Origin: Octopus sinensis
Taxonomy: Eukaryota
DNA: 64,000 nt
Reading direction: 5' to 3'
NCBI RefSeq assembly: GCF_006345805.1
Contig: NC_043010.1
Location: forward strand, 59,520,001-59,584,000
The notes under the pieces: model-generated
The model's database searches: none
What the model saw: only the letters and a program-made list of their open reading frames with translations
What the model was told of the DNA's origin: nothing
Program-made: the position numbers and the translations under genes
Shown: positions 1,267 through 54,082 of the stretch, in pieces
How the letters are laid out: each line of letters opens with the position of its first letter
How positions within the stretch are numbered: position 1 is the first letter of the stretch

Positions 1267-3654
1267 ATAAGAAGATATATTTCCCATTATCCCTGCATAC
1301 TGCCAAGGACAGAAATGTTATTCCTATATGTTTTACTGTCTCTCTTTGACTGTTATTTAAGTGAAGATATCACATATCATGTTGAAGAAGAGAATAGCCC
1401 CTACCTATAGGGACATTGCTACTGACTTAAGAAATCAGACAGCTCCTTCTTAAAGAATAAGGATTTGATTACATTTAGTCAACTGCAACAAAAGGGAGAA
1501 CAGTTTTTTCAATGTGACTAAAACAGGTAAACTGTACACTGTTGAGACAATTGGATGCTGAGTCGTGTGTGGTTATGAGAAAATGTTTTGAAATCGTTAA
1601 AGTTGCTGTTTTCACATCCAAGACATTATGAAGATCTTAAAGATTAAAGTCATAATAGAAGACATCAATGACCACCAACCTGAGTTCCCCGAGAAAGAAA
1701 TCACCCTGCAATTTGAAGAAGAATATGGGAAAGGAAAACAAAATCCTGTACCTAACGCTATTGACAAAGATATAGGTTATCAAAACAGTTTAATTAGATA
1801 TGAGTTACATGGTCATACAAATCTTTTTTCATTATTTGTCTCTAAACAAGCTGATGGATTATCAACCTTAACAATTATTTTAGAAGAGAAATTAGACAGA
1901 GAAAAGAAGGACAATTACAATATTGAGGTCATCGCCAAAGATGGGGGAACTCCACCAAAACAATCTGTTTTAAATGTTAAAATATCTGTAAAAGATGAAA
2001 ATGACAACAGACCACAATTTTCTCAAAGTATCTACAATGTCTCTATAGAACATAAACATAAAAAGAATATTCCAGTAGTCACATTATCTGCCAGTGATTT
2101 AGATATTGGTAAGAATGGTAAAATATCTTTCTATTTTAGTAGAAAAACAGCTGAACAAACGAGGAAAAATTTCATGTTGGAAGAAGATACTGGAAAGTTA
2201 TTTTTATCAAAATCTTTAGGAAGTGGTAAGGAAGATATTTTAAAATTATATGTAGAAGCCAGGGATGATGGCATGCCTCCTCTGAGTTCCATAGCAACTG
2301 TTATGGTAAATGTCATCAACCAACAAAACAATCCCCAAATATTGATGTGAACTTTATTTCTACACAGAATCACAACACAGCTACCATTCTGGAAGACATC
2401 AAAGTTGGTAGTTTCATTGCTTATGTGATGGTCACTGACAATGATGTTGGACACAATGGACAGGTGAACTGTCATATCAAAGACGACACATTCAAACTAC
2501 AGTCAATGGGATCGAAGGAATATAAATTGTTCTAAAGAAAGCAGTAGACAGAGAGACACAGGAACATTATCACTTTACTGTGTCGTGTGAAGATAAAGGA
2601 TTACCTGCTCTGAAAACTGATAAAGATCTGTCAATCCAAGTGTTGGATGGAATGATGTAGAACCACACTTTACGAAAGACACATTCAAGTTCCTTACCTA
2701 TGAGAATGACAAGCTAATTTCCCTATTGGCTTTATCAATGCTACAGACCCAGATATGGTAAGGGAGGTGAATTGTCTTATACTCTGAGAATAAACAGCAA
2801 TATCGTCTGCCATTCCAGATTATCAACTCTGGCTTTATTTCAACAAACCAGTCTTTAGACAGAGAACACAGAGATTTCTATGAGTTGAGGTTTTTGTGAA
2901 AGACAATGGAAGCCCATCTCTGAATAACACAGTGAATGTTGAAGTGGAAGTATTGGATAGAAATGATAATGCTCCATATTTTACATTTCCTAGTGTTGAC
3001 CCTTTCACTCTTAATGTCCACTATCATCCGCAAAGTAAGAACGACATCACAGTTCTGAAAGCATCTGATATAGACAGTCACATGAATGCTTTTCTCAGGT
3101 ATGAAATCGTTTCAGGTAACGAGAGACAGTTTTATTTAAACTGGATTCGTTCACTGGTGTGTTATCTTACTCTCGCACAGTTTACCAAAATGATGCCGGA
3201 TCATATGAGCTTGAGTTTGTTGTGAAAGATAGTGGTACTCCAGTTCTGTCAGCAACACTAGTGTGTCTTTGACACTGACTGTTAGTAACAAGACGTCACC
3301 AATGTTCACAGCTGTGCACCTACCAAGTGATAACACAATAGATGCGACATTGTTGATTATCATTGTAGTAGCAGCTGTGAAGTATCTATAGCTATTGTGG
3401 TTTCTATAACCCTGTGTATTGTGAGATGTAACAATGTGAGAAATAGCTCATCTGAAAGAACAGCAGAAGAGAAACAGGCATACCAATGTCGCAATGAGAT
3501 GAGACAGTTGATCTATCAAGGTAACAACAGTGTACCTGTGATGTCAGGTAATCGAGGAGAGATGTCAGAGAGATATGGTCATTCGAGGAGCCATTACTAT
3601 CCTGAAGACTGGAAGACATCAACAATGAACAGAAGTTTACCAAAAAGTATGAAG
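1267..3654 (+). CDS. PCDH: Protocadherin P1 large exon (signal, EC1-EC6, TM, proximal tail); reading frame broken by many 1-nt indels, probably assembly errors
   Basis: Acceptor tttcag at 1261-1266, ATG 1315 (MLFLYVLLSLFDCYLSEDITY), ORF pieces 1628-2350, 2347-2535, 2896-3225 and 3397-3687 with DxNDN/LDRE cadherin motifs, donor AAG|gtatgt at 3654/3655. About 15 nt shorter than intact sisters with almost no substitutions in conserved blocks. Confidence 0.85.
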
Positions 3655-8112: not shown

Positions 8113-10512
8113 ATGAACAAATTGTGTTCTCCTTATCCCTGGATACTGTCAAGAACAGAAATGTTATGTCTGTATGTATTACTGACTTTCTTTCACTTTT
8201 CCCTAAGTGAAGATATCACATACCATGTTGAAGAAGAGAATAGTCCCTATACCTATGTAGGGGACATTGCTACTGACTTACAGAAATCAGACAGCTCCTT
8301 AAAGAATAAGGATTTGATTACATTTAGTCAACTGCAACAAAAGGGAGAACAGTTGTTCAATGTGACAAGAACAGGCAAACTGTACACTGTTGAGACATTG
8401 GATGCTGAGTCTGTGTGTCGTTATGAGAAAGAATGTTTTGAAATCGTTAAAGTTGCTGTTCACAAATCCAAGACATTTATGAAGATCTTAAAGATTAAAG
8501 TCATAATAGAAGACATCAATGACCACCAACCTGAGTTTCCAACTGAAGAAGTCAACATTCAGTTTTCTGAAACAGATGGCAAAGGCACGAAAAGATCAAT
8601 ACCCAATGCTGTTGATAAAGATATGGGTTATCAAAATAATTTAATTAAGTATGAATTAAAAGAGGATAATGAACATTTCTCTTTATTAGTTGCCAAACAA
8701 GCTGATGGCATATCATCATTAGAAATTATTTTAGAAGATAAATTAGACAGAGAAAAGAAGGACAATTATGATATTGAGATCATTGCTAAAGATGGGGGAA
8801 CTCCACCAAAACAATCTGTTTTAAATGTGAAAATATCTGTAAAAGACGAAAATGATAACAGACCACAATTTTCTCAAAGTATCTACAATGTCTCTATTGA
8901 ACATAAACATAAAAAGAATATTCCAGTCGTCACATTATCTGCCAGTGATTTAGACATTGGCAGGAATGGTAAAATATCTTTCTATTTTAGTCAGAAAACT
9001 GATGAAACGATAAAAGAATACTTTCATTTAGATGAAAGTACTGGAAAGTTATTTCTTGAAAAACCTATAAATTTTGGTAAGAAAGAATCATTTAAATTAT
9101 ATGTGAAAGCCAAAGATAATGGAATTCCTCCTCTGAGTTCCATTGCAATAATTCAGATAAATGTTATCAACCAACACAACAATCCCCCAAATATTGATGT
9201 GAACTTTATTTCTACACAGAATCACAACACAGCTACCATTCTGGAAGACATCAAAGTTGGTAGTTTCATTGCTTATGTGATGGTCACTGACAATGATGTT
9301 GGACACAATGGACAGGTGAACTGTCATATCAAAGACGACACATTCAAACTACAGTCAATGGGATCGAAGGAATATAAAATAGTTCTAAAGAAAGCAGTAG
9401 ACAGAGAGACACAGGAACATTATCACTTTACTGTGTCGTGTGAAGATAAAGGATTACCTGCTCTGAAAACTGATAAAGATCTGTCAATCCAAGTGTTAGA
9501 TGTGAATGATGTAGAGCCACACTTTACGAAAGACACATTCAAGTTCCTTACCTATGAGAATGACAAAGCTAATTTCCCTATTGGCTTTATCAATGCTACA
9601 GACCCAGATATTGGTAAGGGAGGTGAATTGTCTTATTCTCTGAGAAATAAACAGCAATATCGTCTGCCATTCCAGATTATCAACTCTGGCTTTATTTCAA
9701 CAAACCAGTCTTTAGACAGAGAGCACAGAGATTTCTATGAGTTTGAGGTTTTTTGTGAAAGACAATGGAAGCCCATCTCTGAATAACACAGTGAATGTTG
9801 AAGTGGAAGTATTGGATAGAAATGATAATGCTCCATATTTTACATTTCCTAGTGTTGACCCTTTCACTCTTAATGTCCACTATCATCCGCAAAGTAAGAA
9901 CGACATCACAGTTCTGAAAGCATCTGATATAGACAGTCACATGAATGCTTTTCTCAGGTATGAAATCGTTTCAGGTAACGAGAGACAGTTATTTAAACTG
10001 GATTCGTTCACTGGTGTGTTATCTTACTCTCGCACAGTTTACCAAAATGATGCCGGATCATATGAGCTTGAGTTTGTTGTGAAAGACAGTGGTACTCCAG
10101 TTCTGTCAGCAACAACTAGTGTGTCTTTGACACTGACTGTTAGTAACAAGACGTCACCAATGTTCACAGCTGTGCACCTACCAAGTGATAACACCATAGA
10201 TGCGACATTGTTGATTATCATTGTAGAGCAGCTGTGATAGTATCTATAGCTATTGTGGTTTCTATAACCCTGTGTATTGTGAGATGTAACAATGTGAGAA
10301 ATAGCTCATCTGAAAGAACAGCAGAAGAGAAACAGGCATACCAATGTCGCAATGAGATGAGACAGTTGATCTATCAAGGTAACAACAGTGTACCTGTGAT
10401 GTCAGGTAATCGAGGAGAGATGTCAGAGAGATATGGTCATTCAAGGAGCCATTACTATCCTGAAGACTGGAAGACATCGACAATGAGCAGAAGTTTACCA
10501 AAAAGTATGAAG
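8113..10512 (+). CDS. PCDH: Protocadherin P2 large exon (EC1-EC6, TM); two 1-nt indels (T6 at 9749-9754; missing t near 10227), probably assembly errors
   Basis: ttttgtttcag acceptor, ORFs 8104-9786, 9737-10237 and 10234-10536 join into a full protocadherin; donor AAG|gtatgt 10512/10513. Confidence 0.92.
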
Positions 10513-14956: not shown

Positions 14957-17358
14957 ATGAACAAATTGTGTTCTCCTTATCCCTGGATACTGTCAAGAAC
15001 AGAAATGTTATGTCTGTATGTATTACTGACTTTCTTTCACTTTTCCCTAAGTGAAGATATCACATACCATGTTGAAGAAGAGAATAGTCCCTATACCTAT
15101 GTAGGGGACATTGCTACAGACCTACAGAAATCAGACAGCTCCTTCTTAAAGAATAAGGATTTAATTACATTTAGTCAACTACAACAAAAGGGAGAACAGT
15201 TGTTCAATGTGACGAGAACAGGTAAACTGTACACTGTTGAGACATTGGATGCTGAGTCTGTGTGTAGTTATGAGAAAGAATGTTTTGAAATCGTTAAAGT
15301 TGCTGTTCACAAATCCAAGACATTTATGAAGATCTTAAAGATTAAAGTCATAATAGAAGACATCAATGACCACCAACCTGAGTTTCCAACTGAAGAAGTC
15401 AACATTCAGTTTTCAGAGAGAGATAGTAAAGGATCAAAACTATCAATACCCAATGCTGTTGATAAAGATATGGGTAATAAAAATAGTTTAATTAAGTATG
15501 AATTACATGACAACGAAGGGCAATTTTCATTAAGTGTTTCTAAAGAAGCAGATGGAATTTCCACTTTAGAAATTATTTTAGAAGATAAATTAGACAGAGA
15601 AAAGAAGGACAGTTACAATATTGAAGTCATTGCTAAAGATGGAGGAACTCCACCAAAACAATCTGTTTTAAATGTTAAAATATCTGTGGAAGATGAAAAT
15701 GATAATAAACCACAATTTTCTCAAAGTATCTACAATGTTTCTATAGAACATAAACATAAAAAGAATATTCCAGTAGTCACATTATCTGCCAATGACTTAG
15801 ATATTGGCAGGAATGGTAAAATATCTTTCTATTTTAGTCAGAAAACTGATGAAAAAATAAAAGAATACTTTCATTTAGATGAAAGTACTGGGAAGTTATT
15901 TCTTGAAAAGCCTATAAATTTTGGTAAGAAAGAATCATTTAAATTATATGTGAAAGCCAAAGATAATGGAATTCCTCCTCTGAGTTCCATTGCAATAATT
16001 CAGATAAATGTTATCAACCAACACAACAATCCCCCAAATATTGATGTGAACTTTATTTCTACACAGAATCACAACACAGCTACCATTCTGGAAGACATCA
16101 AAGTTGGTAGTTTCATTGCTTATGTGATGGTCACTGACAATGATGTTGGACACAATGGACAGGTGAACTGTCATATCAAAGACAACACATTCAAACTACA
16201 GTCAATGGGATCGAAGGAATATAAAATAGTTCTAAAGAAAGCAGTAGACAGAGAGACACAGGAACATTATCACTTTACTGTGTCGTGTGAAGATAAAGGA
16301 TTACCTGCTCTGAAAACTGATAAAGATCTGTCAATCCAAGTGTTGGATGTGAATGATGTAGAACCACACTTTACGAAAGACACATTCAAGTTCCTTACCT
16401 ATGAGAATGACAAAGCTAATTTCCCTATTGGCTTTATCAATGCTACAGACCCAGATATTGGTAAGGGAGGTGAATTGTCTTATTCTCTGAGAAATAAACA
16501 GCAATATCGTCTGCCATTCCAGATTATCAACTCTGGCTTTATTTCAACAAACCAGTCTTTAGACAGAGAACACAGAGATTTCTATGAGTTTGAGGTTTTG
16601 TGAAAGACAATGGAAGCCCATCTCTGAATAACACAGTGAATGTTGAAGTGGAAGTATTGGATAGAAATGATAATGCTCCATATTTTACATTTCCTAGTGT
16701 TGACCCTTTCACTCTTAATGTCCACTATCATCCGCAAAGTAAGAACGACATCACAGTTCTGAAAGCATCTGATATAGACAGTCACATGAATGCTTTTCTC
16801 AGGTATGAAATCGTTTCAGGTAACGAGAGACAGTTATTTAAACTGGATTCGTTCACTGGTGTGTTATCTTACTCTCGCACAGTTTACCAAAATGATGCCG
16901 GATCATATGAGCTTGAGTTTGTTGTGAAAGACAGTGGTACTCCAGTTCTGTCAGCAACAACTAGTGTGTCTTTGACACTGACTGTTAGTAACAAGACGTC
17001 ACCAATGTTCACAGCTGTGCACCTACCAAGTGATAACACCATAGATGCGACATTGTTGATTATCATTGTAGTAGCAGCTGTGATAGTATCTATAGCTATT
17101 GTGGTTTCTATAACCCTGTGTATTGTGAGATGTAACAATGTGAGAAATAGCTCATCTGAAAGAACAGCAGAAGAGAAACAGGCATACCAATGTCGCAATG
17201 AGATGAGACAGTTGATCTATCAAGGTAACAACAGTGTACCTGTGATGTCAGGTAATCGAGGAGAGATGTCAGAGAGATATGGTCACTCGAGGAGCCATTA
17301 CTATCCTGAAGATTGGAAGACGTCAACAATGAGCAGAAGTCTTCAAAAGTCCACAAAG
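14957..17358 (+). CDS. PCDH: Protocadherin P3 large exon; one 1-nt deletion (T4 at 16596-16599), probably an assembly error
   Basis: ORFs 14948-16603 and 16600-17403; acceptor tttcag 14956; donor AAG|gtaagt 17358/17359. Confidence 0.93.
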
Positions 17359-19342: not shown

Positions 19343-19869
19343 GAGATTTAGTTTAGAATTAGGTCAGACACACACTAACTGTTATTGTCAATATTGTATT
19401 TACATTTTAAATTACACACACATTAACAACATCAGCCATATTTTGTTAATATAACCTCTCTGTTCTAAGGATTTCTATGTCAGTCTCTCTCCACATCAGA
19501 CATGTTGGTGTTATATAGACTTATCATGGCTGACTGTTAGTGGAGCTGATAGTTTGTTGTCCCTCTCTTTTCATTGTGAGGGAAAACACATCAAGTGTGA
19601 GTGAGGCTGGAGTGAGCATCACCCATCTCTCTTCCTCTCTCTGTCTCTCACTCACACCCATGCACACACTCACTAAACACCACACATCCACAGAGGAAGA
19701 CTTGAGAGGGAACTGCTGGTTCCCACTGACTCACCACCAACACTATTCCATCAACATGAAGCCATTGTCACACCATAGCAGCAGTGACACAGACAACCAT
19801 TAACAACAGAACATTGGGACCAAGTCACAGTTTATACAACAAAGGATTTTACACACAATGAAGGTAAGT
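19343..19869 (+). promoter_or_regulatory. Promoter core plus leader exon 1 of P4
   Basis: Conserved block; ATG AAG 19858-19863, GTAAGT at 19864. Confidence 0.7.
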
Positions 19870-20459
19870 TTATTGTTCAATATTATTTATTCAAATTACG
19901 TGAAATAATGATTTCATATGTAGCCTTCCTGTAATATCAAAATATAATATTCTGATGGTGGCCATATTAGATCTGTGTCAGTTCATATTGAATGTCTTCT
20001 TTTCAGACATGGCTGTTGAATATTTTGATAACAGCTCTAGGAAAAGAAAAACTGTTTAGGAATATAATGTCCATTATTTCAATATACTATATTTTTAATG
20101 TTCCCAGGTTTTCATGTACTTGTTTCCTTATTCTTATCTAGTTTCTTCTAAATGATTGTGTACTGATAAATTGATACAGACATTTTATAGGAATTTCTCT
20201 GAAATATCTCGGTGGCAGACTATTTCCATATGTATGAAATTATAGTAATAATATAATAAAATATATTATAAAACTAACATTTGACTGTGTAGTAACAAGA
20301 AAGAAAAGTATGAATAAAAATTGATATGGATATTGTTGTATGTATTTTTATGTGTTTTATGATGTTTAAGTGTGTGTGTGTGTGTTTGTTTGTCTAAATA
20401 CATTAATTGGTTAATTTCTGTATATCTCGTCTTGTATCATTATTACTTCTTTCATTTAA

Positions 20460-22482: not shown

Positions 22483-24885
22483 ATTAATAATGTGAATCTG
22501 CCAAATTCCTGGACATCACGACCAGAGATGCTGTTGTGTCTCTGTATTTTATTGACTTTTTCTCATTGTTATTCAAGTGAAGATATCACATATCATGTTG
22601 AAGAAGAGAATAGTCCCTATACCTATGTAGGGGACATTGCTACTGACCTACAGAAATCAGACAGCTCCTTCTTAAAGAATAAGGATTTAATTACATTTAG
22701 TCAACTACAACAAAAGGGAGAACAGTTGTTCAATGTGACGAGAACAGGTAAACTGTACACTGTTGAGACATTGGATGCTGAGTCTGTGTGTAGTTATGAG
22801 AAAGAATGTTTTGAAATCGTTAAAGTTGCTGTTCACAAATCCAAGACATTTATGAAGATCTTAAAGATTAAAGTCATAATAGAAGACATCAATGACCACC
22901 AACCTGAGTTTCCAACTGAAGAAGTCAACATCCAATTTTCAGAGAGAGATGGTAAAGGATCAAAACTATCAATACCCAATGCTGTTGATAAAGATATGGG
23001 TTATAAAAATAGTTTAATTACATATGAATTAAAAAAGGAAGATCAGTATTTCTCTTTACTAGTTGCCAAACATACTAATGGAATATTAACATTGGGAATT
23101 ATTTTAGAAGAGAAATTAGACAGAGAAAAGAAGGACAGTTACAATATTGAAGTCATTGCTAAAGATGGAGGAACTCCACCAAAAGAATCTGTTTTAAATG
23201 TTAAAATATCTGTAAGAGATGAAAATGATAATACACCTCTCTTTTCGCAAAGTATTTACAATGTCTCTATTGAACATAAACATAAAAAGAATATTCCAGT
23301 CGTCACATTATCTGCCAGTGATTTAGATATTGGCAGGAATGGTAAAATATCATATTACTTTGCCAGGAAAACTGCTGAGAAAATGAAGAGACATTTTAAT
23401 TTAGATGAAAATACTGGGAAATTATATTTAGCTACATCTTCAGAAATTGATAAGGATGAATCTTTAAAATTATACATTGAAGCCAGAGATGATGGCAGTC
23501 CTCCACTGAGCTCCGTAGCAATAATTCAGATAAATGTTATCAATGAACACAACAATCCCCCAAATATTGATGTGAATTTTATTTCTACACAGAATCACAA
23601 CACAGCTACCATTCTGGAAGACATCAAAGTTGGTAGTTTCATTGCTTATGTGATGGTCACTGACAATGATGTTGGACACAATGGACAGGTGAACTGTCAT
23701 ATCAAAGACAACACATTCAAACTACAGTCAATGGGATCGAAGGAATATAAAATAGTTCTAAAGAAAGCAGTAGACAGAGAGACACAGGAACATTATCACT
23801 TTACTGTGTCGTGTGAAGATAAAGGATTACCTGCTCTGAAAACTGATAAAGATCTGTCAATCCAAGTGTTGGATGTGAATGATGTAGAACCACACTTTAC
23901 GAAAGACACATTCAAGTTCCTTACCTATGAGAATGACAAAGCTAATTTCCCTATTGGCTTTATCAATGCTACAGACCCAGATATTGGTAAGGGAGGTGAA
24001 TTGTTTTATTCTCTGAGAAATAAACAGCAATATCGTCTGCCATTCCAGATTATCAACTCTGGCTTTATTTCAACAAACCAGTCTTTAGACAGAGAACACA
24101 GAGATTTCTATGAGTTTGAGGTTTTTGTGAAAGACAATGGAAGCCCATCTCTGAATAACACAGTGAATGTTGAAGTGGAAGTATTGGATAGAAATGATAA
24201 TGCTCCATATTTTACATTTCCTAGTGTTGACCATTTCACTCTTAATGTCCACTATCATCCGCAAAGTAAGAACGACATCACAGTTCTGAAAGCATCTGAT
24301 ATAGACAGTCACATGAATGCTTTTCTCAGGTACGAAATCGTTTCAGGTAACGAGAGACAGTTATTTAAACTGGATTCGTTCACTGGTGTGTTATCTTACT
24401 CTCGCACAGTTTACCAAAATGATGCCGGATCATATGAGCTTGAGTTTGTTGTGAAAGACAGTGGTACTCCAGTTCTGTCAGCAACAACTAGTGTGTCTTT
24501 GACACTGACTGTTAGTAACAAGACGTCACCAATGTTCACAGCTGTGCACCTACCAAGTGATAACACAATAGATGCGACATTGTTGATTATCATTGTAGTA
24601 GCAGCTGTGATAGTATCTATAGCTATTGTGGTTTCTATAACCCTGTGTATTGTGAGATGTAACAATGTGAGAAATAGCTCATCTGAAAGAACAGCAGAAG
24701 AGAAACAGGCATACCAATGTCGCAATGAGATGAGACAGTTGATCTATCAAGGTAACAACAGTGTACCTGTGATGTCAGGTAATCGAGGAGAGATGTCAGA
24801 CAGATACGGTCATTCGAGGAGCCATTACTATCCTGAAGACTGGAAGACATCGACAATGAGCAGATCACTTCAGAAGTCTACAAAG
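22483..24885 (+). CDS. PCDH: Protocadherin P4 large exon, intact (EC1 22579-22911, EC2 22912-23244, EC3 23245-23568, then EC4-EC6, TM)
   Basis: 817-aa ORF 22492-24945; acceptor ttttacag 22482; signal ATG 22528; EC1 Cys-X5-Cys (CSYEKEC); donor AAG|gtaagc 24885/24886; exon length 2403 (multiple of 3). Confidence 0.97.
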
Positions 24886-26552
24886 GTAAGCCTTATTTGG
24901 ATTGAGTGTTTGTTAGTAGTTAATGTTCAATTAAGAAGTATTTGAATAGAAGACATCGACAGTGAACTGAAGTTTGCCAAAAAGCATGAAAATATGTATT
25001 AATCTTCTATTTCGGTATTCTCTTAAATCTCCTCTGGATAACAACTTCATTTATACTTTTAGTGTAATCTTTATATTTTCATAAATATAGTTTTAGATAT
25101 TATTTCCATAATTATTATCCAACAATGTCTGTATAACATTATCAATTGTGTATTTCATCTGTTTTGTTTGGTTTTGAAGTATTCAGTGTTCTTCAACGTA
25201 TGTCTTAAAGAAACTTTCCATGGATGAAATCCTGTGACTTGTAACTCTTCAAACAAAACACATATATTAAGTTTGTGACATCAATTATGTTTATAGTATT
25301 AGAGCTGCTTCTAATTCAGAATTTAGTTTCAGTTTATTTTGTACTCTTTTAGAATTATGAGTTAAGAGTAGAAATTGTTATTTCTGGTATGTTATGTTGC
25401 TCATCTACACCAGTCTGCGATATTTTATTATTGTTTGACTGTAACGACATTCAATATTTAAATAAATCATTACACTGGCATATAAATATACAAGTTTTTT
25501 TTTTCTGTTGCATAAGGGTTTGGTCCAGATGTAGGGCCTGTGTCCTTGACCCTCACAATTGAGGTTAATGTAGCTTATTCTCTTGAATAATTAATTACTA
25601 GTATAAAACAGCTGGAGAAGTATGGGAATAGAGTGAATTTCAGTGGGGAAGATGTTCTGAGGCAGAAAGATTAAGTGGTTGTTGTAGGGTACAGAAAGGC
25701 TGGCAATACGATTGACTAGAGGAGAAGAGATGAGTAAGCTGAGTCGCCCAGGGTGGGACCTCTGAGAGTCGAGGCTTCTGTAAGTGAAGGTAGAAAAGCA
25801 GAGTCAAAGTGATATGGTCCATCAATATATGGAGATGCAACATAACTGGAAGAATGAACATATAGATTGTGGCTATCCTGTCCTTTTTCTAAAAATAATG
25901 GATCTAAGACCACTACTTCTTGTAAGGAAACAAAGAATATTTTGTGAGTGTTTTAGGTTGAATAGAAGCTTCTTGAGTTGTGTTTGTGTGAAGTTTTTAT
26001 CAAAATCCTCGAATCTAATGATCTCACATGCCTTGACCTATAAAGCTGAAATGTTATCACTGCTACTTCACACACAAACATCCTTGATTTTTAATTAATG
26101 TTAAATAGTTAATATTTCATGAGGTATCCTCCTTTCTTGGCAATAATTTATCATTATGGCACTTATTTCTTCTCGTCAATAGATGTGTAGTTATAATTAT
26201 CTAAAATCTCTGAGCTACCTTCTGCATCTTAGTGTTGACTTGAAAAATTTTCAAACAATGTTTCTTTTAGTGATCAGTGAAGACTCACTAAGCAATGCAC
26301 TAACCTCTGCGTCTGAGATGTTCCTTCTCATTTCTTCTTCTCTTACCACTGCCATGGACTCTTTCTATGAATAGCTTGCTGAAAATGAAAACTCATTCCA
26401 GTCTCAAAACTTTTACTGTGGTCTCCTCTCCCATATCTCACACTAACCTTTTTCCCTAACCTTTACACCCCAAAACAGTAAGCATCCAGAATTCCCAAAT
26501 GTTTTTCTTGGACAAATCAAGTCATTGTTGTTTTTGTTTTCTTTAACAGCAG

Positions 26553-26703
26553 AAATACAGTCAACCCATTGAGGTGACATCTTATGGAGACAACAGACCA
26601 TCTTCTCACTATCCCACTGACACACTGGCCAGTCGTAAGAGCAGTGGACAGTGCTGGAGTGAGCGGTCAAGCAGACAGTATGAAGAAATACCAGCAATGT
26701 CAG
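26553..26703 (+). CDS. PCDH: P4 exon 3
   Basis: tttaacagcag acceptor (alt 26550), 151 nt. Confidence 0.9.
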
Positions 26704-27042
26704 GTAAAACAATTTCATTTATCCATCTTAATTGGTGTGTTTATCATTTATCCCATTGATATATCCGGGAGTGAAGTCTAAACAAACACTAGGATTTTGA
26801 GGACTTCCAAAATGTTATTTCTAATAGTTTTATCACTATGAATTAAATTTATAGATTAAAAGTGTAAATCTCTTTTTATTTATTAGTTAATTGTCACGTA
26901 ATATGCTCAACATTGTATAGGTCTAATCGTATAGTGAGGTATTAATCCCTTTATAATAGTTATTTTGTAGAGCATTTAATATGAAAGAAGGAAAAGTTGA
27001 CTAAAGTCAATCGTTGAATACCCATTGATATATATGTTTCAG

Positions 27043-27164
27043 GAATCTATGGTGGTGCCCCACCCGATGTATCAAGCACCAGTGAGAGAGACCATTATCA
27101 AGACAGATATGTGAAACCTCCAGAGAGACAGTTACCTTCAACACCAGATGTTGTTGTCAGTTAA
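27043..27164 (+). CDS. PCDH: P4 terminal exon 4
   Basis: gtttcag acceptor, 122 nt to TAA. Confidence 0.9.
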
Positions 27165-30842: not shown

Positions 30843-33245
30843 ATTAATAATGTGAATCTACCAAATTCCTGGACATCACGACCAGAGATGCTGTTGTGTC
30901 TCTGTATTTTATTGACATTTTCTCATTGTTATTCAAGTGAAGATATCACTTACCACGTTGAAGAAGAGAATAGTCCCTATACCTATATAGGGGACATTGC
31001 TACTGACTTACAGAAAGCAGACAGCTCCTTCTTAAAGAATAAGGATTTGATTACATTTAGTCAACTGCAACAAAAGGGAGAACAGTTGTTCAATGTGACG
31101 AGAACAGGTAAACTGTACACTGTTGAGACATTGGATGCTGAGTCTGTGTGTAGTTATGAGAAAGAATGTTTTGAAATCGTTAAAGTTGCTGTTCACAAAT
31201 CCAAGACATTTATGAAGATCTTAAAGATTAAAGTCATAATAGAAGACATCAATGACCACCAGCCTGAATTTCCAACTGAAGAAGTCAATATTCAATTTTC
31301 TGAAACAGATGGCAAAGGCACGAAGAGATCAATACAAAATGCTGTTGATAAAGATATGGGTTATAAAAATAGTTTAATTAAGTATGAATTAAAAAAGGAA
31401 AATCAGTATTTCTCTTTACTAGTTGCAAAACATACTAATGGAATATCAAGATTGGGAATTATTTTAGAAGATAAATTAGACAGAGAAACAAAAGACAGCT
31501 ACAATATTGAAGTCATTGCTAAAGATGGGGGAACTCCACCAAAACAATCTATTTTAAATGTTAAAATATCTGTGGAAGATGAAAATGATAACACACCTCT
31601 CTTTTCGCAAACTATCTACAATGTCTCTATAGAACATAAACATAAAAAGAATATTCCAGTAGTCACATTATCTGCCAGTGATTTAGATATTGGCAGGAAT
31701 GGTAAAATATCATATTACTTTGCCAGGAAAACTGCTGAGAAAATGAAGAGACATTTTAATTTAGATGAAAATACTGGGAAATTATATTTAGCTACATCTT
31801 CAGAAATTGATAAGGATGAGTCTTTAAAATTATACATTGAAGCCAGTGATGATGGCAGTCCTCCGCTGAGCTCTGTAGCAATAATTCAGATAAATGTCAT
31901 CAATGAACACAACAATCCCCCAAATATTGATGTGAATTTTATTTCTACACAGAATCACAACACAGCCACCATTCTGGAAGACATCAAAGTTGGTAGTTTC
32001 ATTGCTTATGTGATGGTCACTGATGATGATGTTGGACACAATGGAGAGGTGAACTGTCATATCAAAGACGACACATTCAAACTACAGTCAATGGGATCGA
32101 AGGAATATAAAATAGTTCTAAAGAAAGCAGTAGACAGAGAGACACAGGAACATTATCACTTTACTGTGTCGTGTGAAGATAAAGGATTACCTGCTCTGAA
32201 AACTGATAAAGATCTGTCAATCCAAGTGTTGGATGTGAATGATGTAGAACCACACTTTACGAAAGACACATTCAAGTTCCTTACCTATGAGAATGACAAA
32301 GCTAATTTCCCTATTGGCTTTATCAATGCTACAGACCCAGATATTGGTAAGGGAGGTGAATTGTCTTATTCTCTGAGAAATAAACAGCAATATCGTCTGC
32401 CATTCCAGATTATCAACTCTGGCTTTATTTCAACAAACCAGTCTTTAGACAGAGAACACAGAGATTTCTATGAGTTTGAGGTTTTTGTGAAAGACAATGG
32501 AAGCCCATCTCTGAATAACACAGTGAATGTTGAAGTGGAAGTATTGGATAGAAATGATAATGCTCCATATTTTACATTTCCTAGTGTTGACCCTTTCACT
32601 CTTAATGTCCACTATCATCCGCAAAGTAAGAACGACATCACAGTTCTGAAAGCATCTGATATAGACAGTCACATGAATGCTTTTCTCAGGTATGAAATCG
32701 TTTCAGGTAACGAGAGACAGTTATTTAAACTGGATTCGTTCACTGGTGTGTTATCTTACTCTCGCACAGTTTACCAAAATGATGCCGGATCATATGAGCT
32801 TGAGTTTGTTGTGAAAGACAGTGGTACTCCAGTTCTGTCAGCAACAACTAGTGTGTCTTTGACACTGACTGTTAGTAACAAGACGTCACCAATGTTCACA
32901 GCTGTGCACCTACCAAGTGATAACACAATAGATGCGACATTGTTGATTATCATTGTAGTAGCAGCTGTGATAGTATCTATAGCTATTGTGGTTTCTATAA
33001 CCCTGTGTATTGTGAGATGTAACAATGTGAGAAATAGCTCATCTGAAAGAACAGCAGAAGAGAAACAGGCATACCAATGTCGCAATGAGATGAGACAGTT
33101 GATCTATCAAGGTAACAACAGTGTACCTGTGATGTCAGGTAATCGAGGAGAGATGTCAGACAGATATGGTCATTCGAGAAGCCATTACTATCCTGAAGAC
33201 TGGAAGACGTCAACAATGAGTCGGACACTTCAGAAGTCTACAAAG
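30843..33245 (+). CDS. PCDH: Protocadherin P5 large exon, intact
   Basis: 817-aa ORF 30852-33305; acceptor 30842; ATG 30888; donor 33245/33246. Confidence 0.97.
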
Positions 33246-39271: not shown

Positions 39272-41629
39272 ATGTTGCTATTTCTCTGTGTTTTACTGAC
39301 TTTCTTCCACTGTTATCTAAGTGAAGATATCACATACCATGTTGAAGAAGAGAATAGTCCCTACACCTATGTAGGGGACATTGCTACTGACTTACAGAAA
39401 TCAGACAGCTCCTTCTTAAAGAATAAGGATTTAATTACATTTAGTCAACTGCAACAAAAGGGAGAACAGTTGTTCAATGTGACGAGAACAGGTAAACTGT
39501 ACACTGTTGAGACATTGGATGCTGAGTCTGTGTGTAGTTATGAGAAAGAATGTTTTGAAATCGTTAAAGTTGCTGTTCACAAATCCAAGACATTTATGAA
39601 GATCTTAAAGATTAAAGTCATAATAGAAGACATCAATGACCACCAACCTGAGTTTACTCAGAAAGAAATTACTCTACATTTTAGGGAAGGAGATGGTAAA
39701 GGTATGAAGAAACCCATACCTAATGCTATTGACAAAGATATGAGTCCAGAAAACAACTTAATTACTTATGAATTAAAAAAAGATAATGGACATTTTTCTT
39801 TATCAGTTTCTAAACAAACTGATGAAATATCAACGTTAAGAATTATTTTAGAAGAGAAATTAGACAGAGAAAAGAAGGACAATTATGATATTGAAGTCAT
39901 TGCTAAAGATGGAGGAAACCCACCAAAACAATCTGTTTTAAATGTGAAAATATCTGTGGAAGATGAAAATGATAATGCACCACAATTTTCTCAAAGTATC
40001 TACAATGTCTCTATTGAACATAAACATAAAAAGAATATTCCAGTAGTCACATTATTAGCCAATGATTTAGATATTGGCAGGAATGGTAAAATATCATATT
40101 ACTTTGCCAGGAAAACTACTGAGAAAGTGAAGAGACATTTTAATTTAGATGAAAATACTGGGAAATTATATTTAGCTACATCTTCAGAAATTGATAAAGA
40201 AGAGTCTTTTAAAATATACATTGAAGCCAGAGATGATGGCACACCTCCTCTGAGTTCCATAGCAACGGTTATAGTAAATGTCATCAACCAACACAACAAT
40301 CCCCCAAATATTGATGTGAATTTTATTTCTACACAGAATCACAACACAGCTACCATTCTGGAAGACATCAAAGTTGGTAGTTTCATTGCTTATGTGATGG
40401 TCACTGACAACGATGTTGGACACAATGGACAGGTGAACTGTCATATCAAAGACGACACATTCAAACTACAGTCAATGGGATCGAAGGAATATAAAATAGT
40501 TCTAAAGAAAGCAGTAGACAGAGAGACACAGGAACATTATCACTTTACTGTGTCGTGTGAAGATAAAGGATTACCTGCTCTGAAAACTGATAAAGATCTG
40601 TCAATCCAAGTGTTGGATGTGAATGATGTAGAACCACACTTTACGAAAGACACATTCAAGTTCCTTACCTATGAGAATGACAAAGCTAATTTCCCTATTG
40701 GCTTTATCAATGCTACAGACCCAGATATTGGTAAGGGAGGTGAATTGTCTTATTCTCTGAGAAATAAACAGCAATATCGTCTGCCATTCCAGATTATCAA
40801 CTCTGGCTTTATTTCAACAAACCAGTCTTTAGACAGAGAACACAGAGATTTCTATGAGTTTGAGGTTTTTGTGAAAGACAATGGAAGCCCATCTCTGAAT
40901 AACACAGTGAATGTTGAAGTGGAAGTATTGGATAGAAATGATAATGCTCCATATTTTACATTTCCTAGTGTTGACCCTTTCACTCTTAATGTCCACTATC
41001 ATCCGCAAAGTAAGAACGACATCACAGTTCTGAAAGCATCTGATATAGACAGTCACATGAATGCTTTTCTCAGGTATGAAATCGTTTCAGGTAACGAGAG
41101 ACAGTTATTTAAACTGGATTCGTTCACTGGTGTGTTATCTTACTCTCGCACAGTTTACCAAAATGATGCTGGATCATATGAGCTTGAGTTTGTTGTGAAA
41201 GACAGTGGTACTCCAGTTCTGTCAGCAACAACTAGTGTGTCTTTGACACTGACTGTTAGTAACAAGACGTCACCAATGTTCACAGCTGTGCACCTACCAA
41301 GTGATAACACAATAGATGCGACATTGTTGATTATCATTGTAGTAGCAGCTGTGATAGTATCTATAGCTATTGTGGTTTCTATAACCCTGTGTATTGTGAG
41401 ATGTAACAATGTGAGAAATAGCTCATCTGAAAGAACAGCAGAAGAGAAACAGGCATACCAATGCCGCAATGAGATGAGACAGTTGATCTATCAAGGTAAC
41501 AACAGTGTACCTGTGATGTCAGGTAATCGAGGAGAGATGTCAGACAGATATGGTCATTCGAGGAGCCATTACTATCCTGAAGACTGGAAGACAGCAACGA
41601 TGAACAGAACACTTCAGAAGTCTACAAAG
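39272..41629 (+). CDS. PCDH: Protocadherin P6 large exon coding part, intact (exon acceptor at 39215/39216)
   Basis: 830-aa ORF 39164-41656; signal ATG 39272 (MLLFLCVLLTFFHCYLSEDITY); 2358 nt to donor AAG|gtaagc, same as P4, P5 and P8. Confidence 0.97.
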
Positions 41630-43780: not shown

Positions 43781-44273
43781 GTTAACACAACAGAAATAAT
43801 ATCACCTTCAACATTCACACAACATTTAAAACAGCAGAAATATATTAGTTACATCATGATATTGCTTTCATATGACTGAATTCCTTTCTATGCATTTCAA
43901 ACTATACATATTATAAATAAATCTTTGGAAGGTTTTTACAGATGAAAAAAATAACCATCAGTTATAGGCATGAAAAGTTTCAATCAAAATATAACTCTCT
44001 GTAATTACATAAACTTAGGTAAGATTAACATTTTTGGAAATTTTAAAATAAATTTTTCTCTTGGTAAAAATAAAATTTAAAAGTAAAAATGCTTTTGAAA
44101 ATGTGTTATTAATGAGTTATTAATTAAATTTTAGGATGTGAGGAAATATCAGCCCATGCCAGCATGGAAAGTAGATGTTAAGTGATGATGATGATGACAG
44201 TTTACATGTATATTCCATATAAATCTTGAATAAGGATTATATTACATGGTAATATTTTAGGAAATAAATAAGA

Positions 44274-51725: not shown

Positions 51726-54082
51726 ATGTTGTTACACCTGTGTGTTTTGCTGACTTTCTTCCACTGTTCCCTAAGTGAAGATATCACATTCCATGTTAAA
51801 GAGGAGAATATTCCTCATACGTATGTAGGGGACATTGCTACTGACTTACAGAAATCAGACAGCTCCTTCTTAAAGAATAAGGATTTGATTACATTTAGTC
51901 AACTACAACAAAAGGGAGAACAGTTGTTCAATGTGACGAGAACAGGTAAACTGTACACTGTTGAGACATTGGATGCTGAGTCTGTGTGTAGTTATGAGAA
52001 AGAATGTTTTGAAATCGTTAAAGTAGCTGTTCACAAATCCAAGACATTTATGAAGATCTTAAAGATTAAAGTCATAATAGAAGACTTCAATGACCACCAA
52101 CCTGAGTTTCCTCAGAAAGAAATTACTTTGCAGTTTGGTGAAGGTGATGGTAAAGGTATGAAGAAAACTATCCCAGGAGCTATTGACAAAGATATTGGAT
52201 ACCAGAACAGCTTAATTACATATGAACTAAGAAATGATGATAAATATTTTTCCTTATCAGTCTCCAAAGAAGCTGATGGTTTATCATCATTAGAAATTAT
52301 TTTAGAAGAGAAATTAGACAGAGAAAAGAAAGACAACTACAATATTGAGGTCATTGCTAAAGATGGAGGAACTCCACCAAAACAATCTGTTTTAAATGTG
52401 AAAATATCTGTGGAAGATGAAAATGATAATAAACCAGAATTTTCTCAAAGTATCTACAATGTCTCTATTAAACATAAACATAAAAAGAATATTCCAGTTG
52501 TCACATTATCTGCCAGTGATTTAGATATTGGCAGGAATGGTAAAATATCTTTCTATTTTAGTAGAAAAACTCCTGATAAAATTAGGAATAATTTTGTATT
52601 AAAGGAAAACACTGGTGTGTTGTATTTAGCTAAACAATTACAAATTGGTAAGGAAGAATCATATAATTATACATTGAAGCAAGGGATGAAGGCAACCCTC
52701 CTCTCAGTTCCATTGCAACTGTTATGGTAAATGTCATCAATGAACACAACAATCCCCCAAATATTGATGTGAATTTTATTTCTACACAGAATCACAACAC
52801 AGCTACCATTCTGGAAGACATCAAAGTTGGTAGTTTCATTGCTTATGTGATGGTCACTGACAATGATGTTGGACACAATGGACAGGTGAACTGTCATATC
52901 AAAGACGACACATTCAAACTACAGTCAATGGGATCGAAGGAATATAAAATAGTTCTAAAGAAAGCAGTAGACAGAGAGACACAGGAACATTATCACTTTA
53001 CTGTGTCGTGTGAAGATAAAGGATTACCTGCTCTGAAAACTGATAAAGATCTGTCAATCCAAGTGTTGGATGTGAATGATGTAGAACCACACTTTACGAA
53101 AGACACATTCAAGTTCCTTACCTATGAGAATGACAAAGCTAATTTCCCTATTGGCTTTATCAATGCTACAGACCCAGATATTGGTAAGGGAGGTGAATTG
53201 TCTTATTCTCTGAGAAATAAACAGCAATATCGTCTGCCATTCCAGATTATCAACTCTGGCTTTATTTCAACAAATCAGTCTTTAGACAGAGAACACAGAG
53301 ATTTCTATGAGTTTGAGGTTTTTGTGAAAGACAATGGAAGCCCATCTCTGAATAACACAGTGAATGTTGAAGTGGAAGTATTGGATAGAAATGATAATGC
53401 TCCATATTTTACATTTCCTAGTGTTGACCATTTCACTCTTAATGTTCACTATCATCCGCAAAGTAAGAACGACATCACAGTTCTGAAAGCATCTGATATA
53501 GACAGTCACATGAATGCTTTTCTCAGGTATGAAATCGTTTCAGGTAACGAGAGACAGTTATTTAAACTGGACTCGTTCACTGGTGTGTTATCTTACTCTC
53601 GCACAGTTTACCAAAATGATGCCGGATCATATGAGCTTGAGTTTGTTGTGAAAGACAGTGGTACTCCAGTTCTGTCAGCAACAACTAGTGTGTCTTTGAC
53701 ACTGACTGTTAGTAACAAGACGTCACCAATGTTCACAGCTGTGCACCTACCAAGTGATAACACAATAGATGCGACATTGTTGATTATCATTGTAGTAGCA
53801 GCTGTGATAGTATCTATAGCTATTGTGGTTTCTATAACCCTGTGTATTGTGAGATGTAACAATGTGAGAAATAGCTCATCTGAAAGAACAGCAGAAGAGA
53901 AACAGGCATACCAATGTCGCAATGAGATGAGACAGTTGATCTATCAAGGTAACAACAGTGTACCTGTGATGTCAGGTAATCGAGGAGAGATGTCAGACAG
54001 ATATGGTCATTCGAGGAGCCATTACTATCCTGAAGACTGGAAGACATCAACAATGAGCAGATCACTTCAAAAGTCTACAAAG
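51726..54082 (+). CDS. PCDH: Protocadherin P7 large exon (acceptor 51681/51682); one 1-nt deletion near 52665, probably an assembly error
   Basis: ORFs 51726-52730 and 52724-54124 overlap; tataattatac versus expected tataaattatac; ATG to donor is 2357 nt versus 2358 in intact copies. Confidence 0.93.

Follow-up and report, generated by a model that had tools for sequence, protein, structure and literature searches.

Eight protocadherin copies (P1-P8) stand in tandem on the forward strand of the stretch of Octopus sinensis DNA analysed here (64,000 nucleotides of contig NC_043010.1, positions 59,520,001 to 59,584,000; hereafter the window), and they raise the question of why genes so alike over most of their length should differ so strongly in parts of EC2 and EC3. 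A sequence-only reading of the locus had taken the near-invariance of EC1 and EC4-EC6 as an interface footprint, and the diversity of EC2 and EC3 as an antiparallel self-recognition code. We find that the array undergoes mosaic concerted evolution through gene conversion and unequal crossing-over, and that the copies differ almost only in two blocks because gene conversion rewrites the remainder to one shared sequence. It is quite probable that this process, together with retention of the two blocks as the binding identity of each isoform, accounts for the locus as a whole.

An array of complete three-exon genes

The window is part of a larger head-to-tail array on an O. sinensis chromosome, in which 40 or more protocadherin genes share one strand; 31 of them entered the family analysis. 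The mature N-terminus EDITY of P1-P8 lies at 1363, 8209, 15053, 22579, 30939, 39323, 51777 and 58586, respectively. Each unit is a complete three-exon gene and not a variable exon, with its own exons 2 and 3 following each of P1-P7; P8 has its own exon 2 in the window and exon 3 beyond the window end (Table 1). The vertebrate-type layout of many variable first exons with shared constant exons is absent from P1-P8, in agreement with Albertin et al., 2022 (PMC9068888), and what lies 5' of each copy is intergenic DNA rather than an intron.

The encoded proteins are protocadherins, as had been proposed. Pfam detects Cadherin_2 (PF08266, 2.2e-12), which is EC1, and Cadherin (PF00028, 2.6e-70, five stretches), and there are therefore six EC domains; these are followed in the copies by a single TM-like segment, LLIIIVVAAVIVSIAIVV, and a cytoplasmic tail. 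Annotated relatives are 876-889 aa long. Open reading frames in the spacers of the window gave no Pfam domain matches. Frameshifts or indels occur in four of the eight copies, with 16 small indels in P1 and one or two frameshifts in each of P2, P3 and P7; those of P1 mark either a pseudogene or unpolished assembly. A P6 copy with 99.96% identity is present on contig C10512.

Octopus and squid protocadherin arrays have been described earlier (Albertin et al., 2015, as cited in PMC6339937 and PMC4978886; Styfhals et al., 2019, PMC6339937; Albertin et al., 2022, PMC9068888), and the present genes are of the same family and the same type of chromosomal super-cluster, with head-to-tail multi-exonic genes. 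In the literature searched we found no domain-resolved analysis of these arrays, and no description for cephalopod arrays of EC2/EC3 variable blocks, synonymous profiles, cross-species tests of concerted evolution or cassette shuffling.

Table 1. Features of the protocadherin units, in positions of the window
Feature	Position	Strand	Remarks
P1 exon 1 (signal peptide, EC1-6, TM, proximal cytoplasmic)	1315..3654	+	16 small indels
P1 variable blocks	about 1682-1888, 2129-2332	+	
P2 exon 1	8161..10512	+	two frameshifts, one in-frame 3-nt deletion
P2 variable blocks	8533-8739, 8980-9183	+	
P3 exon 1	15005..17358	+	single frameshift, in T run
P3 variable blocks	15380-15586, 15827-16030	+	
P4 exon 1, intact	22528..24885	+	ATG 22528, mature N-terminus 22579
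P4 exon 1 donor	after 24885	+	AAG/GTAAGC
P4 EC1 core	22640..22880	+	class A homogenised (dS about 0-0.15); strongly diverged between classes
P4 EC2 variable block, strands A-E, mature aa 110-178	22906..23112	+	dS 0.85, dN/dS 0.27, mosaic of shuffled cassettes
P4-vs-P5 short conversion patch	22929..22977	+	14 clustered differences
P4 conserved island (EC2 E-F loop to strand G, linker, EC3 strands A-C)	23113..23352	+	partly homogenised, dS 0.26
P4 EC3 variable block, Phe-X10-Phe loop to strand G, mature aa 259-326	23353..23556	+	dS 0.83, dN/dS 0.25
P4 EC4-EC6, TM, proximal cytoplasmic region	23557..24785	+	identity decay over the exon's last ~100 nt
P4 exon 2 (QKYSQPIEV...)	26550..26705	+	94-100% identity across 8 units, own copy each
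P4 exon 3 with stop (IYGGAPPD...DVVVS)	27045..27164	+	98-100% identity across units
P5 exon 1, intact	30888..33245	+	variable blocks 31266-31472, 31713-31916
P6 exon 1, intact	39272..41629	+	variable blocks 39650-39856, 40097-40300
P7 exon 1	51726..54082	+	one frameshift; variable blocks 52104-52310, 52551-52753; clear O. bimaculoides counterpart
P8 exon 1, intact	58535..60892	+	variable blocks 58913-59119, 59360-59563
P8 exon 2	61510-61665	+	

Two sub-domain blocks of diversity

With P4 as reference, variation is packed into two blocks, 22906-23112 and 23353-23556, as had been noticed at about 22912-23115 and 23350-23550. The diversity lies in EC2 and EC3, as proposed, but in sub-domain blocks (EC2 strands A-E and EC3 strands C-G) rather than in the whole domains, and the conserved LDRE...NGKIS island reported between them is confirmed at 80 residues. 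Among P2-P8, 80 of 137 columns vary inside the blocks versus 36 of 631 outside (odds ratio 23, Fisher p = 7e-43). The mean differences per pair are 2.8/109 residues in EC1, 21.9/69 in the EC2 block, 6.5/80 in the island, 23.1/68 in the EC3 block and 2.1/334 in EC4-6.

P2 and P3 differ by 17 amino acids in the EC2 block, 6 in the island and 1 in the EC3 block, and P4 and P5 by 9, 5 and 1; earlier by-eye counts (about 22 and 2, and about 13 and 2, for the two blocks) had caught the pattern but overstated the figures. The non-coding DNA of P4 and P5 is 95-100% identical, and the EC2 block is the exception with 89%. The near-identity of these flanks had also been recognised, although their upstream part had been mistaken for intron. 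In total, 14 gene pairs combine the same EC3 block with different EC2 blocks, P2/P3 and P4/P5 among them.

Variable sites were placed by secondary-structure element, not residue by residue on a dimer interface, and on this scale the most variable elements are the EC2 C-D loop and the EC3 E-F loop, both outside the canonical interface elements. The blocks also take in the EC2 D-E loop and the EC3 C-D (Phe-X10-Phe) loop, which form subtype-specific contacts in vertebrate dimers (PMC7082078, PMC5001838). EC3 strand A, a canonical interface element, is invariant, and the blocks are contiguous stretches of DNA whose borders disregard structural faces.

Mosaic concerted evolution of the array

Synonymous divergence follows the same blocks. 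Among class A genes, dS is 0.10 in EC1, 0.85 in the EC2 block, 0.26 in the island, 0.83 in the EC3 block, 0.044 in EC4, 0.005 in EC5 and 0.048 in EC6, and the sliding profile agrees; low dS in EC5, EC6 and the cytoplasmic region together with high dS in EC2/EC3 is the pattern of region-restricted gene conversion. Between class A and class B, dS is 1.2-2.2 in EC1-3 and 0.006-0.06 in EC4-6. No fewer than 40 array genes match a 647-nt EC4-EC5 probe (23554-24200) at 99% or more of its nucleotides, and in most unit pairs the non-coding DNA is unalignable, yet the coding blocks are 96-100% identical. P2 is itself a chimeric unit, with an upstream flank like that of P3 and downstream introns like those of P1. 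The two kinds of block also differ in GC3, which is 0.35-0.39 where sequence is homogenised and 0.23-0.28 in the variable blocks.

The homogeneity is also species-specific. For EC4-6 and TM, genes of O. sinensis compared with one another have a dS of 0.02-0.05, as do those of a record labelled Argonauta hians, versus 0.19-0.24 between the two; in the variable blocks dS reaches about 1 or higher whether genes of one species or of both are compared. From EC4 to the cytoplasmic region, paralogues are 4-10 times closer within species than between, unlike in the variable blocks, and species-specific EC4 residues are common to all paralogues of that species. As synonymous sites are frozen too and homogeneity is species-specific, the cause is gene conversion and not protein-level constraint alone. 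Part of the low between-species dS of EC4-6 could reflect synonymous constraint; cephalopod protocadherins have been reported as enriched in RNA editing (bioRxiv 10.1101/714394). Gene conversion or recent duplication has already been suggested for the likeness of octopus and squid array genes (Albertin et al., 2015, as cited; PMC9068888; PMC6339937).

In every gene, the region from EC4 through the cytoplasmic region is homogenised, and exons 2 and 3 less completely, whereas the EC2 A-E and EC3 C-G blocks escape homogenisation and keep old paralogue lineages (dS about 0.85). EC1 is kept identical by conversion inside each gene class. It had been considered a universal invariant, but its invariance is confined to one gene class, and other array genes with the same EC4-6 have a diverged EC1 (dN 0.18, dS about 2). 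Conversion mediated by cDNA was considered, since exons are homogenised and introns are not, and was rejected as unsupported because identity tapers across the final ~100 nt of exon 1, with no step at the splice junction.

Two simpler origins of the near-identity can be set against these data. If repeats had been collapsed, or polished to a consensus, during long-read assembly, EC4-6 could look homogenised without being so, and long-read-typical indel errors in P1-P3 and P7 and the O. bimaculoides assembly gaps that fall exactly in the EC4-6 block point that way. An artefact is nevertheless extremely improbable: the same homogeneity appears in the independent gap-free assembly labelled Argonauta hians and in annotated O. 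vulgaris and O. bimaculoides proteins, copy-specific SNPs remain inside the block, and the units carry distinct flanks. Some recent duplication did happen: identity is 95-100% for P4/P5 and, in P2/P3, for their upstream flanks. As a general explanation, however, a very recent burst of duplication from a single ancestor, with faster mutation afterwards in the two blocks alone, is contradicted and highly unlikely. Introns and spacers of most unit pairs cannot be aligned, the blocks have diverged at synonymous sites too and share lineages with O. bimaculoides, and classes with EC1-3 dS above 1 have EC4-6 in common; a burst holds for the P4/P5 pair only.

Diversifying selection had been expected in the blocks. 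Their dN/dS is instead 0.25-0.30 (pooled Nei-Gojobori), an outcome that the earlier reading had itself named as telling against it, and no positive selection was found in them by pooled Nei-Gojobori, sliding-window or parsimony site-count analysis, the power of which is limited by synonymous saturation and recombination; the best nominal p values of the site counts, 0.035 and 0.041 among about 140 sites, did not survive multiple testing. Between O. sinensis and O. bimaculoides the blocks are conserved (dN/dS 0.06-0.18, two O. bimaculoides genes only). For P7 and its counterpart, dN is 0.019 and dS 0.34 in the EC3 block, and dN is 0.052 and dS 0.29 in the EC2 block, compared with a dN of about 0.21-0.23 among paralogues. 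On these two genes, conservation is isoform-specific, as paralogues vary and orthologues are conserved. Each block lineage is under purifying, not positive, selection, with counterparts recognisable in O. bimaculoides. Argonauta-labelled genes were also considered as orthologues; their blocks are similar at the type level only (dS 0.5-1.5) and they were therefore left out of this comparison.

These results bear on the interpretation that EC1 and EC4-6 are fixed by protein constraint (an EC1:EC4 clamp and promiscuous cis contacts) while diversifying selection for a self-recognition code drives EC2 and EC3 apart. The amino-acid pattern fits it, the EC1 G strand and the EC4 B strand are kept family-wide, and vertebrates offer a precedent (PMC5001838). 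It is improbable all the same, and its evolutionary part is already contradicted. Synonymous sites are frozen like replacement sites (dS 0.005-0.10 versus 0.85), homogeneity is species-specific, EC1 differs between classes with the same EC4, no site in the blocks has dN/dS significantly above 1, and the youngest duplicates differ by imported cassettes rather than new mutations. The interface footprint originally seen in the frozen domains is thus not upheld. Before amino-acid invariance in a tandem family is taken as interface constraint, synonymous sites should be checked.

Inside the blocks, recombination shuffles existing sequence. The PHI test is significant in the EC2 (p < 0.001) and EC3 (p = 0.005) blocks, and a matrix of cassette types contains shuffled combinations. 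In the patch 22929-22977, the state of P4 is common to P3 and array genes L007 and L027, and that of P5 is mostly common to P2, P8 and L019. Short conversion tracts therefore move pre-existing cassettes among genes without erasing diversity, which gives every gene a unique combination. The C-terminal two-thirds of the EC2 block co-varies with the EC3 block (Mantel r 0.24-0.50), in line with the covariation that had been anticipated; common ancestry of two unconverted remnants can explain it.

A purely neutral DNA-level mosaic, in which early-diverged blocks became refractory to conversion, similar ones were homogenised and no recognition code is involved, must also be weighed. As the blocks are contiguous and ignore structural faces, and EC3 strand A is invariant, a DNA-level cause without selection for diversity is possible, and divergence itself blocking conversion is a possible one. 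The gradual taper of identity at tract ends and the conversion signature in GC3 fit as well. This explanation is unlikely, however, because neutral drift predicts dN/dS near 1 and the blocks are under purifying selection and conserved between species, because conversion does occur inside them but shuffles rather than homogenises, and because the same two domains are spared in the independently expanded vertebrate clusters (PMC4978886).

The pattern of restricted diversity is already known from those vertebrate clustered protocadherins (alpha, beta and gamma), which like the octopus genes are tandem six-EC genes with a dS peak in EC2/EC3 and a minimum in EC5/EC6 (PMC4978886). Region-restricted gene conversion was reported there by Noonan (2004) and Wu (2005), as cited in PMC4978886, and, along with EC2/EC3 diversity, by Etlioglu (2016; PMC4978886). 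Mouse alpha isoform identities (EC1 96%, EC2 69%, EC3 59%, EC4 85%, EC5 98%; PMC4978886) give a profile nearly equal to that of the octopus array, although octopus isoforms often share the EC3 block, in contrast to the low mean EC3 identity of mouse alpha. In vertebrates, the escape of EC2/EC3 from conversion has been put down to their role in setting homophilic specificity (PMC4978886). The octopus expansion is independent of the vertebrate one and differs in its complete three-exon genes with own C-terminal exons, as opposed to variable exons with shared constant exons (PMC9068888). Also, homogenisation goes further in octopus (99% or more of nucleotides identical in at least 40 genes, across classes), the spared blocks are sub-domain in extent, and positive selection was not detected, unlike in vertebrate clusters.

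Proposed binding identity and the dimer model

The AlphaFold2 model of EC1-4 (pLDDT 85) retrieves with Foldseek a top 46 consisting entirely of delta-2, delta-1 or clustered protocadherin EC1-4/EC1-6 structures (E = 1e-44 to 1e-37, TM 0.55-0.72). The best PDB match by sequence and fold is 6vg1 (E = 1.5e-88, TM about 0.68), and the nearest solved relatives by both measures are delta-2 and clustered EC1-4 fragments, for both of which antiparallel EC1-EC4 dimers are reported (PMC7082078). The delta-2 protocadherins (Pcdh8, 10, 17, 18, 19), the best PDB matches, share six ECs with the octopus genes. Their antiparallel EC1-4 dimer has a conserved hydrophobic core between EC1 G strand and EC4 B strand and variable EC2 D-E and EC3 C-D loops (Harrison et al., 2020, PMC7082078; Cooper et al., 2016, PMC5115871). 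Unlike the octopus genes, which form an array, delta protocadherins are scattered singly through the genome; cis interaction has not been detected in them (PMC7082078), and some of their binding is heterophilic.

The conserved EC4 leucine of delta-2 is replaced by tyrosine at the aligned octopus position: in the HMMER alignment, Pcdh10 Leu362 corresponds to Tyr357 and Val359 to Phe354, each at least 90% conserved among 93 octopod protocadherins. On the EC1 side, an approximate mapping through Pcdh8.1 points to Ile94, within the invariant KILKIKV strand, as the probable partner. At these core positions (Leu88/Leu362 in Pcdh10), character seems to be kept and residue identity is not. Both strands are conserved across the family, and the EC1 G strand is conserved as protein between classes despite high or saturated dS in two of three class comparisons.

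The EC2:EC3 code inferred for the locus is a published model. EC2/EC3 specificity combined with a non-selective hydrophobic EC1/EC4 affinity was proposed for vertebrates by Nicoludis (2016; PMC5001838), and the octopus variable elements include its EC3 Phe-X10-Phe and EC2 beta4-beta5 (D-E) loops; Goodman (2016; PMC5106212) disputes it, with specificity spread over all of EC1-4, self-interacting central residues included. We found no octopus protocadherin binding data in the literature searched. An antiparallel EC2:EC3 specificity model is plausible for the octopus copies. Isoforms would pair in trans as antiparallel EC1-4 dimers like those of delta and clustered protocadherins, with the variable blocks setting the binding identity of each isoform. 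The blocks may persist through selection against conversions that erase or mismatch them. The common EC1, EC4-6 and cytoplasmic regions would provide one scaffold and one signalling route for all isoforms; any putative cis contact would be non-selective, since EC5-6 is identical in all of them. The promiscuous cis pairing proposed for the locus would have no parallel in the delta protocadherins, which are just as near to the octopus genes as the clustered ones. The 14 EC3-sharing pairs argue against a strictly complementary EC2:EC3 code: with purely EC2:EC3' contacts and the same EC3 block, a heterodimer would equal the average of two homodimers, and hence allow no discrimination.

A more specific, tentative possibility is that identities are modular, with a conversion-constant scaffold (EC1, EC4-6 and tail), a freely shuffled EC2 A-strand cassette and a co-inherited, possibly co-adapted pair of EC2 B-E and EC3 C-G cassettes. 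If so, the array would amount to a system that shuffles cassettes over evolutionary time, with an origin separate from the vertebrate one, and P2/P3 and P4/P5 would either show that EC2 changes alone re-code recognition or mark groups of cross-reactive isoforms. These pairs, identical outside one block, are natural chimeras, and they make directly testable both the disputed sufficiency of EC2:EC3 for specificity and the homophily of cephalopod protocadherins.

Two large-brained animal lineages expanded their protocadherins independently, and the octopus reached the domain architecture of the vertebrate clusters with a different gene structure. In both, diversity is restricted to EC2/EC3 on an otherwise homogenised scaffold. 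The presence of the same architecture in octopus and vertebrates strengthens the view of EC2/EC3 as the seat of protocadherin identity, and the view that gene conversion and selection together shape such arrays.

Gene copies and variable windows

The window carries eight copies of a ~2.36-kb ORF (P1-P8, numbered 5' to 3'), all on the + strand and head-to-tail; at the protein level they match best to Octopus sinensis models named "protocadherin beta-15-like". In the product of P4, the coordinate reference, a first cadherin domain of the protocadherin type is followed by five cadherin repeats, a TM segment and then a short cytoplasmic part. The exon 1 frame terminates at a consensus donor (AAG/GTAAG). 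Each of P1-P7 has a 156-nt exon 2 and a 117-nt exon 3 of its own downstream, which encode the C-terminal 90 residues of annotated relatives; P8 likewise has an exon 2 of its own, and exon 3 of P8, not found between exon 2 and the window end, lies beyond that end. Because each copy has its own C-terminal exons, these are eight complete three-exon genes, in agreement with the cephalopod architecture stated by Albertin et al. (2022; PMC9068888), and variable exons feeding shared constant exons are ruled out.

P4, P5, P6 and P8 are intact. The indels of P1 and the frameshifts of P2, P3 and P7 may mark pseudogenes within a homogenised array or local uncorrected long-read errors. An unplaced 27-kb contig (C10512; loci L002 and L015) bears a 99.96% identical copy of P6 with one frameshift, and a second array gene whose closest match, locus L023, reaches only 96.6%; the contig probably represents an alternative haplotype or a part of the array that was wrongly separated.

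Several non-coding features accompany the genes. A full-length 5S rRNA match (Rfam RF00001, 48.3 bits vs a gathering score of 38) lies ~1.2 kb downstream of P8 exon 2, at the expected position of P8 intron 2, and is possibly a 5S-derived insertion lengthening that intron. A ~600-bp block, 92-100% identical in all unit pairs, lies 0.5-1.1 kb after each exon-3 stop within unalignable spacer; it may be 3'UTR sequence that has been homogenised, or else a regulatory element, common to the units, that serves the next gene. The P6-P7 spacer is ~4 kb longer than the others; its three ORFs have no Pfam matches, and the extra DNA is probably a degenerate repeat insertion.

Mapped on a codon alignment, variable columns among P2-P8 are concentrated in two blocks of exon 1, the EC2 and EC3 windows (80/137 vs 36/631 elsewhere; odds ratio 23, p = 7e-43). 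This confirms the two divergent blocks around a conserved island that the sequence-only reading had described, as sub-domain stretches and not as whole domains. On an AlphaFold2 model (pLDDT 85) used for strand assignment, the EC2 window covers EC2 strands A-E, the island EC2 strands F-G and EC3 strands A-C, and the EC3 window the stretch from the EC3 Phe-X10-Phe loop through strand G. Between P2 and P3 there are 17 residue differences in the EC2 window, 6 in the island and 1 in the EC3 window; for P4 vs P5 the counts are 9, 5 and 1. P4 and P5 are 95-100% identical all along their non-coding DNA and only 89% in the EC2 window.

Features of the window (P4 coordinates for exon 1 segments)
Feature	Position	Strand	Remarks
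P1	1315-3654	+	16 small indels vs paralogues, many outside homopolymers
P2	8161-10512	+	one or two frameshifts
P3	15005-17358	+	one or two frameshifts
P7	51726-54082	+	one or two frameshifts
EC2 window	22906-23112	+	mature residues 110-178
Island		+	LDRE to NGKIS, 80 residues, between the windows
EC3 window	23353-23556	+	mature residues 259-326
P4/P5 patch	22929-22977		14 clustered differences
Residue 213	~23215-23217		before DENDN linker: E, K or R
Residue 219	~23233-23235		after DENDN linker: R, K, A, P, T or L (nominal p = 0.035, replacement excess)
~600-bp block	19411-19922		equivalent in every unit
P6-P7 spacer	43781-51700
Spacer ORF	46363-46728	+	ORF call
Spacer ORF	47234-47620	-	ORF call
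Spacer ORF	49189-49557	-	ORF call
5S rRNA match	62855-62973	+

Homogenised blocks and shuffled cassettes

Synonymous sites follow the same profile as the protein, both in P2-P8 and in 24 class A genes (array genes with an EC1 like that of P4).

Synonymous divergence (dS) along exon 1
Segment	P2-P8	24 class A genes
EC1	0.11	0.10
EC2 window	0.70	0.85
Island	0.26	0.26
EC3 window	0.72	0.83
EC4	0.04	0.044
EC5	0.013	0.005
EC6	0.018	0.048

A sliding profile (15-codon window) shows two sharp dS peaks >1 over a near-zero background. Introns and spacers are unalignable for most unit pairs, and chimeric units occur, P2 being like P3 upstream and like P1 downstream. Searching with a 647-nt EC4-EC5 probe recovers at least 40 copies with >=99% identity, all on one strand between 59.47 and 59.87 Mb of the contig. 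Five genes of a second class and two singletons are anciently diverged from class A in EC1-EC3 (dS 1.2-2.2), with EC4-EC6 at a dS of only 0.006-0.06; thus the EC1 that the sequence-only reading regarded as frozen is invariant only within a class. A gap-free locus in a record labelled Argonauta hians holds three neighbouring genes with the same structure of windows and homogenised blocks. For EC4-6 and TM, dS is 0.02-0.05 within O. sinensis and within this record and 0.19-0.24 between them; in the windows it is ~1 or more within and between species alike. At the protein level, species-specific EC4 residues are common to all the Argonauta-labelled paralogues.

As judged from these comparisons, the array pattern is the classical signature of concerted evolution. 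Near-identical EC4-6 could in principle be an assembly artefact, which is unlikely because independent assemblies and other species display the same pattern. Constraint combined with diversifying selection, as originally proposed, gives way to mosaic concerted evolution, synonymous sites being frozen too. GC3 in exon 1 of array genes (22528-24885 in P4) is 0.35-0.39 in the homogenised blocks vs 0.23-0.28 across the two windows and the island, which fits GC-biased gene conversion.

When cassettes from 33 genes were clustered at 6% nucleotide distance, with the windows split in thirds, EC4 formed a single type, the EC2 window 23-25 types per third and the EC3 window 17-21. Single cassettes are common to non-adjacent genes in differing combinations, and the PHI test detects recombination (p < 0.001 in the EC2 window, 0.005 in the EC3 window); both windows are mosaics. 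In P4 and P5, the youngest duplicate pair, the P4 state of the patch recurs in P3 and loci L007 and L027, and the P5 state mostly in P2, P8 and L019; the patch is thus a short conversion tract importing an existing cassette, not new mutations. Across the 31 non-redundant genes, every EC2-window and every EC3-window protein sequence is unique.

Selection and the proposed recognition code

The site-wise dN/dS comparison suggested by the sequence-only reading did not bear out diversifying selection. Pooled dN/dS reaches 0.25-0.30 in the windows, against 0.05-0.15 outside them, with a local maximum of ~0.5 in the sliding profile. When synonymous and replacement changes were counted by parsimony on trees of the segments, no site was significantly above neutral after multiple testing, and the most variable sites change at roughly the regional synonymous rate. 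Given a conservative method and saturated, recombinant data, positive selection at a minority of window sites is possible but demonstrated at none. Between P7 and its O. bimaculoides counterpart, dN is 0.019 in the EC3 window (dS 0.34) and 0.052 in the EC2 window (dS 0.29); a second O. bimaculoides gene has the EC3 cassette of loci L012, L026 and L027 (dN 0.012-0.024). Compared with typical window dN between paralogues (0.21-0.23), these low values indicate isoform-specific conservation, the vertebrate criterion for nominating specificity determinants (PMC5001838, PMC5106212). At the O. bimaculoides locus L031 (CM046614.1, 2,479,753-2,503,032), N-gaps fall exactly across the homogenised EC4-EC6 block, so the proteins annotated there (models of 646 and 1102 aa) come out truncated or fused.

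The nearest solved structures by sequence and fold are EC1-4 fragments of delta-2 and clustered protocadherins, for which antiparallel EC1:EC4/EC2:EC3 dimers have been reported (PMC7082078, PMC5115871, PMC5001838). The EC4 B strand is near-invariant among 93 octopod protocadherins, the conserved Pcdh10 Leu362 aligning to octopus Tyr357, and the protein sequence of the EC1 G strand is conserved across classes, two of the three class comparisons showing high or saturated dS. These observations make a conserved EC1:EC4 contact credible.

There are points for and against the proposed placement of variable residues at the EC2:EC3 interface. The EC2 D-E and EC3 C-D loops, which make subtype-specific contacts in vertebrates (PMC7082078, PMC5001838), fall within the variable blocks, and interface elements listed in the literature have higher mean entropy than the rest (0.72 vs 0.52, p = 0.006). 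However, the most variable elements, the EC2 C-D and EC3 E-F loops, are not canonical interface elements, and interface strand A of EC3 is invariant. In pairwise distance, the C-terminal two-thirds of the EC2 window correlates with the EC3 window (Mantel r 0.24-0.50) and not with the intervening island, and the N-terminal third is uncoupled from EC3. The co-variation could reflect co-adaptation or, equally, common descent of two remnants that escaped conversion.

The EC3 window is common to both members of fourteen gene pairs, P2/P3 and P4/P5 among them, that differ at 8-28 residues in EC2; pairwise gene comparison found no reverse case. Under a code based only on EC2 and the partner's EC3, we infer that a P2:P3 heterodimer would have one P2-type and one P3-type interface, with the average stability of the homodimers. 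Vertebrate dimers have self-interacting residues close to the two-fold axis (PMC5106212), and residues of this kind could restore discrimination. Residues 213 and 219, rare variable positions of the island, flank the EC2-EC3 DENDN linker; in vertebrate dimers the linker region lies near this axis and is a site of known self-interacting specificity residues (PMC5106212). Delta protocadherins have shown no cis multimers (PMC7082078), and promiscuous cis multimers of octopus isoforms would be pure extrapolation. An EC2:EC3 self-recognition code may be considered a reasonable analogy, with these specific difficulties attached.

Comparison with vertebrate clusters

In vertebrate clusters, EC1 and EC5 are near-identical, EC2/EC3 are diverse and dS is lowest in EC5/6 (PMC4978886); the published explanation is that gene conversion is excluded from EC2/EC3 (Etlioglu, 2016; PMC4978886), and Noonan (2004) and Wu (2005) are cited there for both profile and explanation. 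Nicoludis et al. (2016; PMC5001838) assigned specificity to EC2/EC3 and non-selective affinity to EC1/EC4, a model disputed by Goodman et al. (2016; PMC5106212). For octopus protocadherin arrays, the searched literature yielded no domain-resolved analysis and no binding study. The octopus family, which expanded independently and has a different gene architecture, has the same domain profile. The array thus adds a further example of a known phenomenon and is not a new kind of system; it is of interest chiefly for its convergence with vertebrates and for the natural chimeras that it makes available to experiments.
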